Sequence record: NC_019410.1
Strand: one strand, 5' to 3'
Length of the DNA: 64,000 bases
The notes beneath the pieces are model-generated. The model did not search any database, was not told where the DNA came from, and was given only the letters and a program-made list of their open reading frames with translations. Each line of letters begins with the position of its first letter. The stretch's first letter is position 1. Positions 39,117 through 43,338 of the stretch are shown here, one piece after another. Both the position numbers and the translations under genes were made by a program.

Positions 39117-39807
39117 AGAGAAGCTCCGGTTTGGCGCTGACCGGCTTGGACCAATCCCAGACGTACCAAGCGTAGGCGAAGCGCGGGGCGCCCTTGGTGC
39201 CGGCGATCCAGCGGGGGCGGTGACGAAGGGTGACCTTCGCGGTGAAAGCGGGGTGATCGAACAGGTCCGCGCGCGAGCGCGCCGCGTCCCATTCGTGGCG
39301 GCAGAGGAAGGCCACGAGGCCCTGGTCGGCCTCCATCAGGTCCAGCGCGTGGCGCGCGGCGCGCTCGGCGTCCTTGCCGTAGGGCGGGTTGGTGATGATC
39401 GCGTCCGGACGCGGCGGCAACGGCGTGCTCTTGCGCTCCTCGCCCTTCTCGTCGACAACCGTCTCGGGCCGGACCTTCAGCGCGCCCAGGCGGTCGAGGT
39501 CGGCCGGCGTCAGCTTGAAGAAGTCCTCGACCGCGTCGACCTCGAAGCCCTCGTAGCGGTGGATGTCCGTGGCGAGGACTTCCTGCACGAAGGGCTTGAG
39601 CGGCGTGGCGATGGCGCCGTTGCCGGCGAAGGGCTCCCAGGCGAAGAACGGGGCGAAATCATCGCCCAGGGCCTCGATCAGGGCGTCGAAGGCCGGCCGA
39701 GGAGTCGGGTAAAAGTCCAGCGGGGTCCTGGCATATCCGGAGGCGCCCAGCATGGAGGGGTCTTTGCGACCAGCATCGGAGAGAGACATGGTCGTGAGGG
39801 ATGTCAT
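39106..39807 (-). CDS. Amino (N6-adenine/N4-cytosine) DNA methyltransferase-like protein
   Basis: DFYPTP, WEPFAGNG (SAM binding) and TNPPY motifs. Confidence 0.8.
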   Translation of the reverse strand: MTSLTTMSLSDAGRKDPSMLGASGYARTPLDFYPTPRPAFDALIEALGDDFAPFFAWEPFAGNGAIATPLKPFVQEVLATDIHRYEGFEVDAVEDFFKLTPADLDRLGALKVRPETVVDEKGEERKSTPLPPRPDAIITNPPYGKDAERAARHALDLMEADQGLVAFLCRHEWDAARSRADLFDHPAFTAKVTLRHRPRWIAGTKGAPRFAYAWYVWDWSKPVSAKPELLYAG

Positions 39808-39820
39808 GGTTAACGAAGGG

Positions 39821-39867
39821 TGTCAAGATTCACGACATTGACTGTCGTGACGCAGCACGTTAATCAG
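39821..39867. promoter_or_regulatory. Divergent promoter region: recurrent motif (minus, 39821-39837) and TTGACT (39838-43)...GTTAATC (plus)
   Basis: The motif abuts a plus-strand -35 element directed at the 630-nt RNA. Confidence 0.55.
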
Positions 39868-39869
39868 GA

Positions 39870-40498
39870 GGCAACGGGCCGTCCTTCTGCATTAGCCCCG
39901 CCGCCGCGCCTTCCAGGCGGCACGGGCCGGGACGGTGGTTGGTGACGAGCAGGCCGAGGCAGCGGCGGGCGAGTCGAAGGAGAACCCGGCGAGCGGCGGA
40001 AGGCGTCGTTGACGCCCTCGGACTCGACAAGCACGTGGTGATGCCGGAAATCACCGCGATCGCGCGGACGTCTGGACGTTGCTAGGCGTAAGGCAGGCCT
40101 GCCGAGAAGTGGAAACGGCCGGGGCGGGCGGGACTTGATCTCGTCCGCCTTTCCGCCTAAGCTTCCCTCATTGCAGGCGCAGCACCGCCCTTCGCTAACG
40201 GCCCCGAGGGGTACGCAAGGGCTAGAAGCCTTGCCTGGGACAGGACTGCCTCTGATCCAGGAACGCCCTGGGCCGCGTAGCGCCCATGACGCGAACGCCG
40301 GCCGAGAATGGGCGACTAGGCGTGACGGCGGCCAGAGGCCGCAGCGACATTCCAAGCTCGATAGAGCGATCGGCGGGCCGGGGCGAAAGCCCTGTTTCGA
40401 GAGCCAGGGCAACCCGTCATAGGTCCTGGTCGGGCGACGAGGCAGCAAGTCCCGCGAACGGAGCCTCTGAGGTGGCGTCACCAAGATGCAGCAGACGC
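39870..40498 (+). ncRNA. Unassigned large ornate ncRNA candidate (~630 nt)
   Basis: Nested end-to-end helices (39887-93/40485-91; 39939-47/40476-84), many GNRA hairpins, its own promoter and terminator, and no credible ORF. Confidence 0.65.
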
Positions 40499-40531
40499 AA
40501 AAAGGCCCCGATCGCGAGATCGGGGCCTTTT
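40499..40531. terminator. Bidirectional rho-independent terminator
   Basis: AAAAGGCCCCGATC-gcga-GATCGGGGCCTTTT. Confidence 0.9.
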
Positions 40532-40536
40532 CATGT

Positions 40537-40625
40537 TGGAGCTTCGGGAGGGACTCGAACCCTCATAGGTGTTCCCACCAGCAGAGATTTGCAATCCCGC
40601 GCCTAACCTCTCAGTCCACCGAAGC
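40537..40625 (-). tRNA. tRNA-Cys(GCA) with a long (class II-like) variable arm
   Basis: Acceptor GCTTCGG/CCGAAGC, U73, encoded CCA, anticodon loop TT-GCA-AA, variable arm GGTG-GGAA-CACC, T arm GAGGG-TTCGAGT-CCCTC. Confidence 0.85.
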
Positions 40626-40809
40626 ACAAAAGGACCTCGACGCCCGAAGGCCCGAGGTCCGATCCGTAACCAGGGGAGGGCCGTAGCTGTCCCCTGACCC
40701 TGAACGACAGGTGGCGGGCTTGGTCGTCATCCCGTCAGGCTCGCGGCGCCGCTCGCCTGAACCGCCGATATGCCACGAGGGCAGTGATCCGCAGGTCCCC
40801 ACAAATAGC

Positions 40810-40844
40810 AAAAAGGCCACGATCCGCGAGGACCGTGGCCTTTT
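40810..40844 (-). terminator. Rho-independent terminator closing the GOLLD-like RNA
   Basis: AAAAGGCCACG...CGTGGCCTTTTT on the minus strand. Confidence 0.85.
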
Positions 40845-40845
40845 C

Positions 40846-41722
40846 GTTTTCCGATGGGCTGAGACTACACCCATCAGCAATCCCGCTTCGAGGATTATTC
40901 CCCAGGTGCGACCCCAGGTATTCCCTCGACGTCCACCAGACCCCTTGCGGTAGTCCAGTCCGAGATCATCGCCGCCGTTCTTGCGCACCCCGAAGGGATT
41001 GCGGGTCTGGCGTTTGACCCATCATGGCGAACTACTCGACAGTTCCTTCCCCGCTGGGCTTGCGACCCACTCACCGGCGCTAACCGGCTGACGAAGCTCT
41101 TCCTATCGACACCTCGCGGGCTTGCGACCCTTGAGATGACTCCGTTACCCGAAGGCCGGAGCATTTGGCGACTTACGTCCGCCACTGGACCAGTCTTTGC
41201 GTTTTTCATCGAAGCGGGGATTGAACCCGCGACCGACAGCTTAAGAGGCTGTTGCACTACCACTGTGCTATTCGCAAACCCACCAAGACGTGCTGGTCCA
41301 GTTGTTCCCAGAGCTTTTGACCCCGGAAATGCAACACGCCTCATATCTTTCGCCTTGCGGGCTACTCGACTGCTCTTCAGGACTCCGTCTCCCCCAACCT
41401 TTCGGCCAGGATGCCCAGCACCCCTCGAACTGAAGCAAAGCTCTTCACCGCGAAGTGTCGAACCCTGCAACCCAAACGGTTATCCGTACTCCCTAGACAC
41501 GCTTGCACGGGATAGTCCGCTTGCGACGGACTGGCGGTTAAAGCCTCGGAGTTACCCCGGCCCCGCCTTGTCTCCCACGGTCTTCAGGTCTATCCCCTTT
41601 TGCAAGAGGCGGCCAGCTTCCCAGCCCGGACCCGTCGGCTTCCTCTGTCCTCTTGCGAGGTCGGGCGGCCTATGGGAGACCGTCCCTGTCACCCCGTCGC
41701 CGGGGCTTTCGTCAGAAGCGAC
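40846..41722 (-). ncRNA. GOLLD-like giant ornate RNA (~870 nt)
   Basis: Size, tRNA association, an embedded tRNA, GAGUA E-loop motifs, repeated GCAA tetraloops, and 3' motifs GAGCUUCGUCAGC and GGUGUAGUCUCA recalled from GOLLD; has its own promoter and terminator. Ends are approximate. Confidence 0.78.
41206..41277 (-). tRNA. tRNA-Lys(CTT)-like element embedded in the GOLLD-like RNA; acceptor stem broken, no CCA
   Basis: D arm GCAC-AGTGGTA-GTGC, anticodon arm ACAGC-CT CTT AA-GCTGT, T arm GCGGG-TTCAATC-CCCGC; acceptor TTGCGAA/TTCGATG has only 4 Watson-Crick pairs. Confidence 0.8.
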
Positions 41723-41813: not shown

Positions 41814-41841
41814 TTGACATTCTCGTAAGCCCATGCTAGGT
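41814..41841 (+). promoter_or_regulatory. Promoter TTGACA-N15-GCTAGG for the tmRNA
   Basis: Divergent from the GOLLD promoter. Confidence 0.65.
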
Positions 41842-41844
41842 GTC

Positions 41845-42225
41845 GGAAATCGTTGTAATTCGGACAACGGAACTGGCGGCAAGACAGGGGTGCGAATCCC
41901 CTCGCCTCCACCATCGACGCCCGGCGCTGGGAGTACGCGACTCCTGGGCAGGGAGTGTTACCCTGGCGGGCTGCGGCCCGAGCCAAAGGTAGCCGGGCGT
42001 CGTTGATGGGGGCGACTAGCTTTCGATTGGCGCTCGGGACTGAAAGACGCAACGGTGGGTGACCTCCACATCGGCTTGCCGGTGATCGGGTCAGGCAACA
42101 GTAAATGTCGCCGACAATGACAACGACGTCGTGGCTTTCGCCTCGGCTCGTGAAGCCATCGCCGCCTAATAAGCGGTAGAGGAGCCCGCCGGGAGCTTGG
42201 CAACAGAATCCCGGCAACCCCCTTT
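41845..42225 (+). ncRNA. ssrA: Circularly permuted (two-piece, alphaproteobacterial-type) tmRNA; tag ADNDNDVVAFASAREAIAA
   Basis: The acceptor piece ends T arm-CGCCTCC-A-CCA at 41913. The coding piece starts GGGGGCG at 42008, giving a G3:U70 Ala identity pair. The tag ORF at 42110-42169 ends in AA followed by TAATAA. Confidence 0.92.
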
Positions 42226-42350
42226 CGCAGGCGGGAACACCAACAGGCGATCTGTCGGGCGACCGATTTCCGATCCGTGTTCCCGTCTTCGAAAGGTGGT
42301 CAGGCCTACCCTCTTGGTGTGCTATCCAAGGGTCTGGCCACTTTACAGAA

Positions 42351-42429
42351 CGCGGGGTAGAGGAGTCCGGTTGTCCTCGTCTGGCTCATAACCAGGAGAT
42401 CGTGGGTTCAAATCCCACTCCCGCTCCCA
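42351..42429 (+). tRNA. tRNA-fMet(CAT)-like
   Basis: CGCGGGG 5' end with a C1:U72 mismatch, CTCATAA loop, TTCAAAT T loop and encoded CCA. Confidence 0.88.
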
Positions 42430-42510
42430 ATGCGAACGCCGGCTGTTGAGAACGACGGCGTGACAAGCTCGGAGAGAACGAGCACTCCAGTCCGGGGTAT
42501 GAGGCCGGAC

Positions 42511-42707
42511 TAGCGGACGCCGTAGCGATTGCAGGCGTGACACCCGGAGATAGCGGGACCGGCTTTCCGAGCCGCATGCTCGGCGCGTAAGACCGCAGGC
42601 CTCGGCCATCGGGCAGTGTCAGGGGATGAGGCTAGTCCTCGGCTAACCACCTAGCGGTGAAGCTAGGGCATGCGGTTCGGAAAGCCGGGTTCGCGGTTCG
42701 TCCGCTA
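42511..42707 (+). ncRNA. Unassigned structured RNA with a 27-bp stem and multibranch loop
   Basis: 42553-79 pairs with 42668-94 (26 of 27 positions, 3 GU); outer helix 42511-19/42699-707. Confidence 0.55.
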
Positions 42708-42708
42708 C

Positions 42709-42790
42709 GAGATGGAGATGTCGCCGGTTCGAGTCCGGCAGGTCCCCCAAAAGGAGGCCTTAGCTCAGTCGGTAGAGCGCTCCTATCCCA
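42709..42790 (+). ncRNA. YrlA-like Y RNA / circularly permuted tRNA mimic
   Basis: The order is stem 5' strand, T arm (TTCGAGT), acceptor-like hairpin closed by CAAAA, D arm (AGTCGGTA), stem 3' strand. Confidence 0.7.
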
Positions 42791-42795
42791 CCTTT

Positions 42796-42880: not shown

Positions 42881-42954
42881 AATCGACGCTTGACCCCAGG
42901 CCGCAGGCTGCTAAGCTTCCCCGGTCGGGATCGTCCCGCGTCCTTTCCAAGGTC

Positions 42955-42985
42955 AAGCCCCCGGAGCTTCGCTTCGGGGGCTTTT
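42955..42985 (+). terminator. Rho-independent terminator ending the tmRNA/tRNA unit
   Basis: AAGCCCCCGGAG-cttcg-CTTCGGGGGCTTTT. Confidence 0.85.
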
Positions 42986-43338
42986 CAGTTCTTGACCACC
43001 CGCAGGCGCCGGGCCTCGATGGCGCGCTCCTCCGCCGCCACGCGCGAGACGTCTTGCAGGTGCGCCTTGGCGATCAGGTCGGGCGCGCCCACGGCCCGGA
43101 AGGGCACCTTGACGGAGAGGTCGACATAGCGCCGCAAGAGAGGCTCGAATTCCAGACCCCGCGCCTGGGCGATCCGCGACAATGCGCCGGCGACGATCGC
43201 CACGACCAGGACGTTGGTCGGGGTCTCCTTGGTCAGGGTCCAGATGCCCGGTATCGATTGTCCAGGATGGAGTTCCTGCCGCGACACGTCATCGGCGGCG
43301 GCGCGGAAGAGGTTCTCGTAAGGGACGTTTTCGAGCAT
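42985..43338 (-). CDS. Hypothetical protein
   Basis: 117-aa ORF converging on the terminator. Confidence 0.55.
   Translation of the reverse strand: MLENVPYENLFRAAADDVSRQELHPGQSIPGIWTLTKETPTNVLVVAIVAGALSRIAQARGLEFEPLLRRYVDLSVKVPFRAVGAPDLIAKAHLQDVSRVAAEERAIEARRLRVVKN

Follow-up and report, generated by a model that had tools for sequence, protein, structure and literature searches.

The window analysed here is a stretch of 64,000 nucleotides (nt) of sequence record NC_019410.1, and the element under study is a locus at positions 39,870 to 40,498 to which no Rfam family was assigned at gathering score. A stretch of 711 nt with the locus and its flanks matches Caulobacter phage CcrKarma, called Karma below, at 100% identity (JX100811; 62,000 is added to a window position to give the record position). 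The locus belongs to an island of RNA genes in which Rfam models recognised, at gathering score, a GOLLD RNA with an embedded tRNA-Lys (40856-41342, minus strand), a tRNA-Cys gene (40537-40625, minus strand), a permuted tmRNA (41821-42260, plus strand) and two tRNA-Met genes (plus strand). The region 39830-40535 encodes a structured RNA on the plus strand. It is built of three tandem units, A (about 39873-40151), B (about 40152-40344) and C (about 40345-40530), and each ends in a two-hairpin module that is absent from Rfam 15 and widespread in uncultured phages. The features of the locus are listed here; P1 and P2 are predicted promoters and R1 is the covariance model of the module described below.

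39830-39850, plus strand: perfect palindrome TCACGACA-TTGAC-TGTCGTGA containing the P1 -35 box TTGACT (39838-43), the same in 8/8 aligned phages
39861-39866, plus strand: predicted P1 -10 box, 17 nt past the -35 box, TAATCA in Karma and TAGACA in phiCbK
39864-40445, minus strand: annotated coding sequence CcrKarma_gp130, hypothetical protein of 193 amino acids, PHROG 13461, judged a mis-annotation
39873-40086, plus strand: body of unit A, with hairpins at 39899-39922, 39950-39969, 40002-40016, 40037-40059 and 40068-40089
40087-40151, plus strand: module A, a diverged copy with 5' flank GUAAGGCA; hairpin 1 pairs GGCC 40096-99 with GGCC 40117-20 around the loop UGCCGAGAAGUGGAAAC, hairpin 2 pairs 40121-33 with 40139-51
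40135-40163, plus strand: predicted internal promoter-like P2, TTGATC (40135-40), 17 nt, TAAGCT (40158-63)
40170-40284, plus strand: body of unit B, a type-1 unit with 5' block GCGCAGCAC (40177-85), a hairpin GGCU-AGA-AGCC at about 40220-40230 and one with loop GGACUGCC (40243-50)
40285-40344, plus strand: module B, canonical long form, CAUGACGC-GA-(ACGCC ... GGCGU)-GAC-G-(GCGGCC AGA GGCCGC); R1 82 bits, E ~1e-20
40345-40465, plus strand: body of unit C, with hairpins at 40357-68, 40380-93, 40403-30 and 40439-67
40466-40530, plus strand: module C, terminal variant, CUGAGGU-G-(GCGUC ACCAAGAUGCAGCA GACGC)-AAAAA-(terminator hairpin 40502-13/40518-29)-UUUU

Each unit is a string of local hairpins of some 180-265 nt in all, with the module of about 60 nt last; module starts lie 198 nt apart from A to B and 181 nt from B to C. 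Within the module, the flanks YUGAVGS-GA and GUGAC enclose hairpin 1, and hairpin 2 comes next. In unit A, hairpin 2 carries the -35 box of the following promoter; that of unit B is a short GC hairpin whose loop is of the AGAG type, and that of unit C is the intrinsic terminator. The model R1 describes the module as YUGAVGS-GA-(ACGCC...GGCGU)-GAC-(GC hairpin with an AGA or GAGAG loop). Besides its 82-bit match at 40285-40344, it scored 46-84 bits at 22 further sites, in relatives, in the IMG/VR contig L018 and in one metagenome contig. The locus is read as three units each ending in the module because R1 also places copies at 40087-40151 and 40466-40530. When the hairpins of 22 R1 copies were aligned on sequence only, 24 cells showed a change on both sides of a pair, compared with 9.7 in shuffles (0/500 as high).

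The two outer modules are divergent, and their hairpins covary. At the position homologous to module A, R1 scored 15.3 bits in the related phage Rogue and 9.4 bits in BL57; hairpin 1 is GGCC/GGCC in Karma, GGAC/GUCC in BL10 and CGCCC/GGGCG in BL57, and hairpin 2 is a 13-bp helix (helix 7 of the set below, 92% paired) with the P2 -35 box in its loop. A placement of module A at 40068-89 (ACGUC/GGCGU) was wrong, as the R1 matches in Rogue and BL57 put the module at 40087-40151. In module C, hairpin 1 covaries (GCGUC/GACGC versus GCGCC/GGCGC), and the terminator likewise serves as hairpin 2 in BL57 (13.7 bits), in Bajun (21.1 bits) and in Kabachok (L012, 4515-4590). A pseudoknot candidate in module B, CGCCCAU (40283-89) with AUGGGCG (40307-13) across hairpin 1, holds in the Karma lineage, and Swift, Rogue and BL10 have part of it; inspection by eye of the Colossus, CcrPW (PW), Kabachok and L018 copies found no consistent partner.

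Across the locus, 17 local helices were examined in eight sequences: 92.9% of cells were paired, and 30 pairs were changed on both sides compared with 15.0 +/- 2.4 in shuffles (0/500 as high), figures that are somewhat inflated by the way the helices were chosen (see below). In slid controls at most 44% of cells were paired. Compensatory changes affect helices 1, 2, 3 and 6 of unit A (39899-39922, 39950-39969, 40002-40016, 40068-40089) and helices 14-16 of unit C (40380-93, 40403-30, 40439-67). The unit A hairpin at 40037-40059 rests on an AGGAG/CUCCU replacement in Rogue and BL10, and the unit C hairpin at 40357-68 has a conserved stem and, read by eye, no covariation. Unit B is followed through its blocks: the type-1 blocks recur in the same order with different stems in Rogue, BL10, BL57 and CcrPW (L005, 3859-4060), in Kabachok (L012, 3602-3795) and in L018 (4814-5034), and are recognisable across genera.

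The first-pass annotation had described the region as one ornate RNA of about 630 nt, closed end to end by nested helices and possibly founding a large class of the size of ROOL or OLE. The strings that it quoted, TTGACT (39838-43), GTTAATC (39859-65), CTGCATT/GATGCAG, TTGGTGACG/CGTCACCAA and the internal hairpins, are all where it put them, and several of its local hairpins gained support from comparison: Ccr10, Swift and Magneto have the compensated GGCGAG/CTCGCC in place of GGCGTC/GACGCC, GTGGTGAT/ATCACCGC is replaced by AGGAG/CTCCT in Rogue and BL10, and the GGGC-GAAA-GCCC hairpin is also upheld. The closing helices are confined to one lineage or disrupted in relatives. The perfect 9-bp helix TTGGTGACG/CGTCACCAA is intact in the Karma lineage only (57% of cells paired); in phiCbK, Ccr10, Swift and Magneto, at an overall identity of 90-96%, CCGAAGGCG stands opposite CGTCACCAA. 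Such a helix is close to what chance provides, since about 0.75 perfect 9-bp complements are expected in 630 nt (~2x10^5 9-mer pairs x 4^-9). Shapirovirus retains the 7-bp closing helix, BL57 retains most of it (one C.A mismatch), and in Rogue and BL10 it is broken; the CGAGTC/GACTCG helix occurs in Karma only.

A single large RNA with its ends joined by long-range helices, of a new class like ROOL or GOLLD, is accordingly quite unlikely in our estimate, even though the region lies between a strong, invariant promoter and a strong terminator, the 9-bp and 7-bp complements are perfect in Karma, and RNAalifold proposed some long-range pairs, such as 40180-87 with 40372-78. Hairpin 2 of module A must also come from P1, so P1 transcripts would reach at least unit B. 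Apart from the loss of the closing helices in relatives, the single sequence does not fold more stably than its shuffled versions (z = -0.92 for the plus and 0.06 for the minus strand), and in PW and L018 the type-1 unit is directly followed by tRNA-Cys, with no unit C and so no long-range pairs between B and C. The repeat architecture is the better account of the region. What stands of the claim of an undescribed large RNA class is therefore an uncatalogued structured RNA locus, in the form of a three-unit tandem array and not of one closed 630-nt RNA; it is possible that a single primary transcript of about 660 nt starts at P1 and then serves as a polycistronic precursor, and not as a ROOL- or GOLLD-like single fold.

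The coding sequence annotated across the locus, gp130, is a non-coding structured RNA locus and not a protein gene. We judge it non-coding because it lacks codon periodicity, suffers frame-breaking indels, gives inconsistent open reading frame (ORF) calls and has no Pfam match. Among five Shapirovirus phages, its variable sites are distributed 15/18/22 over the three codon positions, with no third-position excess, unlike those of the flanking genes, the methylase gp129 (8/5/33) and the A1-like gp128 (5/3/34), and 1-nt indels occur at five places. At the syntenic spot the ORF is 137 amino acids long on the minus strand in Rogue, 42 on the plus strand in BL57 and 197 on the plus strand in CcrPW, and there is none in Colossus and BL10. 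The translation had no Pfam domain and matched only PHROG 13461, a family without known function whose members are presumably these very ORF calls in related phages. There is next to no chance that gp130 is a true minus-strand protein gene: the open frame of 193-206 amino acids is present, and similar ORFs annotated in other Shapirovirus phages form PHROG 13461, but spurious long frames are to be expected at 65-70% GC. In the annotation of phiCbK-like phages, the false protein family PHROG 13461 thus gives way to an RNA locus.

Several observations place the RNA on the plus strand. The consensus fold reaches -167.5 kcal/mol on this strand versus -144.5 on the minus strand, a G.U outer pair of hairpin 2 in 6 of the 22 R1 copies favours it, and in Colossus, PW and L018 the units are co-oriented with the adjoining tRNA-Cys, tmRNA and tRNA-Met genes. 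The promoter proposed in the first-pass annotation gained support from comparison: the 21-nt palindrome TCACGACATTGACTGTCGTGA (39830-50) that carries the -35 box does not vary among eight phages whose identity elsewhere is only ~70%, and it occurs nowhere else in the 64-kb window (chance expectation 0). Transcription from P1 is predicted to start at about 39873. The GOLLD and tmRNA promoters have the same TTGACN-N17-TAnnnN geometry; a search of IMG/VR with the promoter core CGACATTGACTGTCG returned chance matches only. From P2, the predicted start is about 40170. The P2 boxes and their spacing are kept while the spacer sequence varies, in BL10 (TTGACC..TAGCGT), in Rogue and in BL57 (TTGACG..TATCAT), and in the Colossus, PW, Kabachok and L018 arrays a TTGAC box follows each unit, with a TAnnnN box about 17 nt further on. 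The P1 -35 box lies in the loop between the arms of an inverted repeat (8 bp, perfect, unchanged across genera), and the P2 -35 box likewise sits within the covarying hairpin 40121-40151; these hairpins could be an operator or a promoter/stem-loop cassette.

At the 3' end of the locus, the terminator noted in the first-pass annotation (40499-40531) is present as a hairpin and U-run. The GC-rich hairpin and U-run expected of an intrinsic terminator are found at 40502-40531, which is hairpin 2 of module C, and were not found for hairpin 2 of module B (40328-42), after which AGCGACAUUCC comes. The terminator of module C was flagged on the minus strand too, where the same hairpin terminates tRNA-Cys. 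The locus is thus convergent on the tRNA-Cys/GOLLD unit with a bidirectional terminator common to both, as had been proposed.

The locus was conserved in 38 phage records, whose hosts are all Caulobacter or Brevundimonas. In 17 of them identity was at least 90% across the full locus length; the Rogue/BL10 group was ~70% identical to the Karma locus and BL57 ~77% over part of the region only, and the jumbo phages Colossus and CcrPW and several Brevundimonas phages kept a core of ~55 nt at 83-93% identity. The corresponding interval of phiCbK is 101,263-101,972 of JX100813. Synteny was constant, with the locus between a DNA methylase gene and tRNA-Cys in all relatives. In Colossus, CcrPW and Kabachok the core is repeated 3-4 times on the plus strand, with starts 225-265 nt apart in each tandem run. 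Arrays of 3-7 units spaced 180-265 nt apart occur at the same genomic position in related phages, namely in Colossus, CcrPW and Brevundimonas phages, and in the IMG/VR contig L018, which has seven module copies. Only 2-5 nt separate the end of the long form from the tRNA-Cys downstream of it in Colossus, PW and L018. A pattern search for the long form in genome contigs gave seven likely chance matches (R1 11-17 bits, the range expected from pattern selection), and no cellular copies were found at the stringency of that pattern.

A shorter form of the module, GAACGCC-loop-GGCGUGAC-stem-GGAGAGA-stem, comes a few nt past tRNA-fMet in Karma and again 80 nt later, and it is in the same places in relatives. 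It was modelled separately as R2, in which GAAC and GUGAC flank hairpin 1 and the loop of hairpin 2 is of the GAGAGA/AGAG type; the two short-form copies in the window are:

42430-42488, plus strand: short-form module after the CCA end of tRNA-fMet (42351-42429); R2 33.9 bits, E = 7e-7
42511-42564, plus strand: second short-form module, between the two tRNA-Met genes; R2 32.7 bits, E = 1e-6

The match at 42430 is partly circular since this copy is among the R2 seeds; the copy at 42511-42564 is conserved in Rogue, BL10, BL57, Colossus and PW. The model was built mostly from unrelated IMG/VR contigs; short-form copies of these phages and of two metagenome contigs make up 6 of the 42 seed rows. 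The short-form pattern was found in more than 120 IMG/VR contigs among the matches listed, where by estimate few are expected by chance. Over 115 copies in 100 loci, 93.7% of cells were paired and 147 cells were changed on both sides, compared with 42 in shuffles (0/500 as high); hairpin 1 is compensated (ACGAC/GUCGU, ACGUC/GACGU) in copies outside the pattern selection. R2 recovered module B at 40289-40348 with 25 bits (E = 1e-4), which places module B in the family. Elsewhere in the window R2 found nothing credible, the sole other match having 13.7 bits (E = 0.09), and Rfam models found nothing at the module sites of twelve test contigs. The long form is a lineage-specific elaboration of a widespread phage two-hairpin module.

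The positions of the module recur. It is found 4-21 nt past tRNA genes, roughly 4-12 nt ahead of them, or both; in several contigs it fills the entire spacer between two tRNAs, and in the IMG/VR set all 21 tRNAs within 150 nt of a module (21/21) are on its strand. Modules are also found 24-37 nt upstream of many start codons and, in many contigs, about 10 nt past TATACT-like -10 boxes; some stand directly before terminators, as in L142, where a full module is followed by a terminator. The loop of hairpin 1 varies from 8 to 30 nt, and one copy seems to be without hairpin 1.

An identical cassette, made of the TATACT box, about 10 nt and the module, precedes quite unlike downstream sequences in related contigs (L113, L141, L144, L162, L166, L169, L191, L192, L198, L200 and others), as though promoter and leader moved together as a mobile cassette. 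Many viral contigs of IMG/VR (L131, L144, L147, L169, L186, L191, L199, L213, L221, L222 and L224) have another conserved element, GCGACACCUGC(C), ~8-12 nt past the module, and ACACCUGC stands between the module and tRNA-Cys in Colossus (L004, 4062-4068) and in CcrPW.

A variant of the module is also placed at the predicted 5' end of GOLLD, where the features are:

41757-41729, minus strand: predicted GOLLD promoter, TTGACG 41757-52, 17 nt, TAGAAC 41734-29
41672-41716, minus strand: module variant about 5 nt past the predicted GOLLD start; R1 15.2 bits in Karma

With R1, the variant also reached 15.2 bits in phiCbK, Ccr10 and Swift; its score in BL57 was 11.3 bits. The sequence is conserved in Karma, phiCbK and BL57 but for one U/C substitution in the last of them, and the promoter spacer is not. 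The GOLLD primary transcript is predicted to be ~910 nt long, to a terminator at 40846-40809, compared with 487 nt in the Rfam model. GOLLD was recognised by Rfam in Karma and BL57, and phiCbK, Ccr10 and Swift also appear to have a locus of GOLLD type, with a tRNA embedded in it and this module at its 5' end; the embedded tRNA is Lys in Karma, Swift and Magneto and Gly in phiCbK, Ccr10 and BL57. In Rogue, BL10, Colossus and CcrPW the island lacks GOLLD.

Other parts of the island were recorded in passing. The tRNA-Cys(GCA), of 87-89 nt, has a long extra arm, which is unusual for tRNA-Cys (only 34-48 bits with the tRNA model). This long-armed form (40537-40625, minus strand, in Karma; L004 4069-4155; L018 5033-5119) is present in all relatives examined, and its orientation flips between phage groups. 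Past the two short modules, between the tRNA-Met genes, about 230 nt (42565-42795, plus strand) are apparently structured and contain tRNA-like pieces: a T-arm-like GCCGGUUCGAGUCCGGC, then ...CCCCCA, then a D-arm-like UAGCUCAGUCGGUAGAGCG; none of the tools gave this stretch an identity. Past the second tRNA-Met (42889-42990, plus strand), a promoter-like TTGACC-N16-TAAGCTTCCC, with a -10 context as in P2, precedes a hairpin-rich stretch of ~60 nt and a terminator (42967-42979) with a T-run, possibly another small RNA gene. In relatives, Kabachok has an RNA-like stretch of ~200 nt with no module before tRNA-Cys (L012, 5440-5710), and CcrPW has ~670 nt that are apparently non-coding, annotated gp171, in the RNA island (L005, 3190-3860).

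These observations would be accounted for by the following scheme. The plus strand would be transcribed from the sigma-70-type P1, and probably from P2 too, up to the terminator shared with tRNA-Cys, the P1 transcript of ~660 nt being a precursor and not one closed fold. The module would act in cis to mark the boundary where an endonuclease separates adjacent RNAs (units, tRNAs, GOLLD, mRNA leaders), and hairpin 2 would be left behind as a protective stable end. The unit bodies would then be the functional cargo, probably trans-acting RNAs of the phage tRNA/tmRNA/GOLLD island. A cis-acting RNA boundary or processing element is our best guess for the module, as judged from where copies lie: processing and end protection are favoured as fitting all contexts, between units, around tRNAs, before terminator hairpins and at 5' ends. 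Before terminators, a cut at the module would bypass hairpins that otherwise block 3' trimming. As a whole, a three-unit precursor RNA locus in the RNA island with modules as cis boundary elements is the best explanation, and we give it about an even chance.

Several points weigh against it. In Karma itself, module A is a partial R1 match of 4.4 bits only, and module C scored weakly (6.6 bits, full-length R1 alignment with filters off). The helices tested were taken from RNAalifold on the same sequence-only alignment, which somewhat inflates their support, and the comparison for units A and C covers only three lineages, which are ~70% identical. The start sites of transcription, P2 and any processing are predictions, and hairpin 2 of module B has no U-tract. 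Genes downstream of the module are co-oriented with it by ORF calls in 72 cases versus 39, in a test that is noisy at this GC content. Finally, the boundary or processing role is argued from position, and an antitermination element or a ribozyme would fit the same positions.

Antitermination is the first of these. The module would be a cis-acting processive element comparable to the HK022 put RNAs, a two-hairpin nascent RNA that modifies RNA polymerase and thereby lets it pass Rho-dependent and intrinsic terminators in long untranslated operons such as unit arrays, tRNA arrays and GOLLD, and that is needed anew after each RNA is cut from the transcript. Its form agrees (two adjacent hairpins, ~55-65 nt, invariant unpaired nucleotides), as do its places about 5 nt past the predicted GOLLD start and ~10 nt past -10-like boxes in many viral contigs, and its repetition along untranslated RNA operons and after tRNAs. 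We nevertheless consider it unlikely: a module variant stands directly before the terminator that evidently ends the locus in Karma, BL57, Bajun and Kabachok, a full module directly precedes a terminator in L142, read-through of 40499-40531 in Karma would give RNA antisense to tRNA-Cys and GOLLD, and R2 finds nothing credible in HK022. The repeats might instead act as DNA, as a promoter/operator array or a replication origin, considering the TTGAC boxes at each unit, the perfect palindrome around the P1 -35 box and the setting among replication genes. This is highly improbable. The stems covary and the unpaired bases are fixed, a sign of selection on the RNA; the strand bias with tRNAs (21 same, 0 opposite) and a hairpin 1 loop of 8-30 nt, which rules out a protein site of fixed spacing, point the same way, and GC skew shows neither an inflection nor an origin signal.

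A new small self-cleaving ribozyme at the unit, tRNA and mRNA boundaries of polycistronic phage RNA would explain the distribution of the module (phage, intergenic, multicopy, tandem, a few nt from tRNA ends) and the invariant unpaired nucleotides around covarying stems, and theta ribozymes similar to that of hepatitis delta virus (HDV) provide a precedent next to tRNAs (PMC10879173). It appears very unlikely in view of the absence of a match to any Rfam ribozyme family and of the module's size: merely two hairpins, with a hairpin 1 loop down to 8 nt and one copy that seems to lack hairpin 1, leave little for an active site. The broader proposal that the module is either an undescribed ribozyme class or the site of a dedicated processing enzyme, which cuts precursors and so matures the Karma array, is speculative and quite doubtful; if true, phages would cut polycistronic precursors into tRNAs, GOLLD, mRNAs and a new family of structured RNAs of ~200 nt.

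The tRNA/tmRNA/GOLLD island of these Caulobacter phages holds many more RNA genes than had been recognised, as tandem units that number 3-7 in the jumbo relatives. A strongly covarying module at tRNA arrays and at the predicted GOLLD 5' end offers a handle on how long untranslated RNA operons are matured or protected, and a possible link to the biology of GOLLD. The phage phiCbK and C. crescentus are tractable for tests of the module, and an RNA-seq time course of phiCbK infection is public (PMC10688885). The phiCbK genome paper mentions neither this RNA nor the non-tRNA genes of the island (PMC3556154), and searches of the literature library used found no link between phiCbK and GOLLD and no description of the RNA island. 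A catalogue of ~10,000 candidate structured RNAs from IMG/VR may hold the module under an anonymous identifier (PMC10690425).

Among known RNA systems, the locus and module form a new sequence family within a known kind, the phage non-coding RNAs and cis-acting transcript elements of tRNA islands. As had been proposed from the letters alone, the locus is a non-coding structured RNA without a family in Rfam 15, and it shows neither features of RNase P or of group I or II introns nor a match to ROOL or OLE. With permissive filters and E<=10, cmscan of 39870-40498 returned only sub-threshold PrrB/RsmZ (19.6 bits, gathering 44) and PhotoRC-I (17.2 bits, gathering 45), and models of RNase P RNA and of group I and group II introns matched nothing at the locus; at the same limit the homologous region of Colossus had no Rfam match. 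ROOL (RF03087), OLE, HEARO and raiA gave nothing at E<=10 in Karma or in the Colossus array, and nothing at gathering score in Rogue, BL57, Colossus, PW, L018, Bajun and Kabachok. The locus resembles them in overall size, and ROOL is also phage- and tRNA-associated, but they differ from it by the absence of a model match and because an end-to-end architecture is not conserved here. The likeness to GOLLD is closer, that of a phage-encoded structured non-coding RNA that lies by tRNA genes or embraces them, in the same tRNA/tmRNA island. The GOLLD model (RF02032), run over 39500-41600 at E<=10, matched only 40856-41342 on the minus strand and nothing at the locus, which differs by its opposite strand, its three repeated units of ~180-265 nt and its lack of model similarity; the unit array is moreover kept in relatives without GOLLD (Rogue, BL10, Colossus, PW).

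The module itself has several partial counterparts. Like the put RNAs of HK022, it consists of ~60-70 nt in two near-adjacent hairpins, belongs to phage transcripts near promoters and acts in cis if at all; in contrast to them, it occurs in many copies per genome, some before terminators or between tRNAs, and R2 run with filters off over the whole HK022 genome found nothing credible (best 12.9 bits in IS903; 5.4 bits in coding sequence). Theta ribozymes, which are minimal and HDV-like, flank phage tRNAs in gut phages (PMC10879173) and share with the module the nature of a small structured RNA a few nt from tRNA ends in phage arrays, with tRNA-Met a frequent neighbour. An HDV-like or theta fold, a nested double pseudoknot of P1, P1.1, P2, P3 and P4 with a catalytic C in J4/2, was rejected, as the 8-9 nt between the hairpin 1 strands of several copies are too short for P2 and P3 of such a ribozyme, and the HDV ribozyme families of Rfam had no match at the locus, the module or the test contigs. 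Hammerhead, twister, pistol and hatchet, as well as ZTP, guanidine-III, K-turn or box C/D and sarcin-ricin-like motifs, were discarded by eye and from general knowledge as misfits in the order of their elements, and have no Rfam support.

T7-like phages carry RNase III processing hairpins, and T4-like phages carry promoter/stem-loop cassettes (PeSLs). The module is like them in being a repeated intergenic structure that punctuates polycistronic transcripts, with promoter boxes near stem-loops and cassettes that recur before different genes. Its fold is another one, of two short hairpins and the invariant GAAC, GUGAC and GAGAGA in place of a long irregular duplex.

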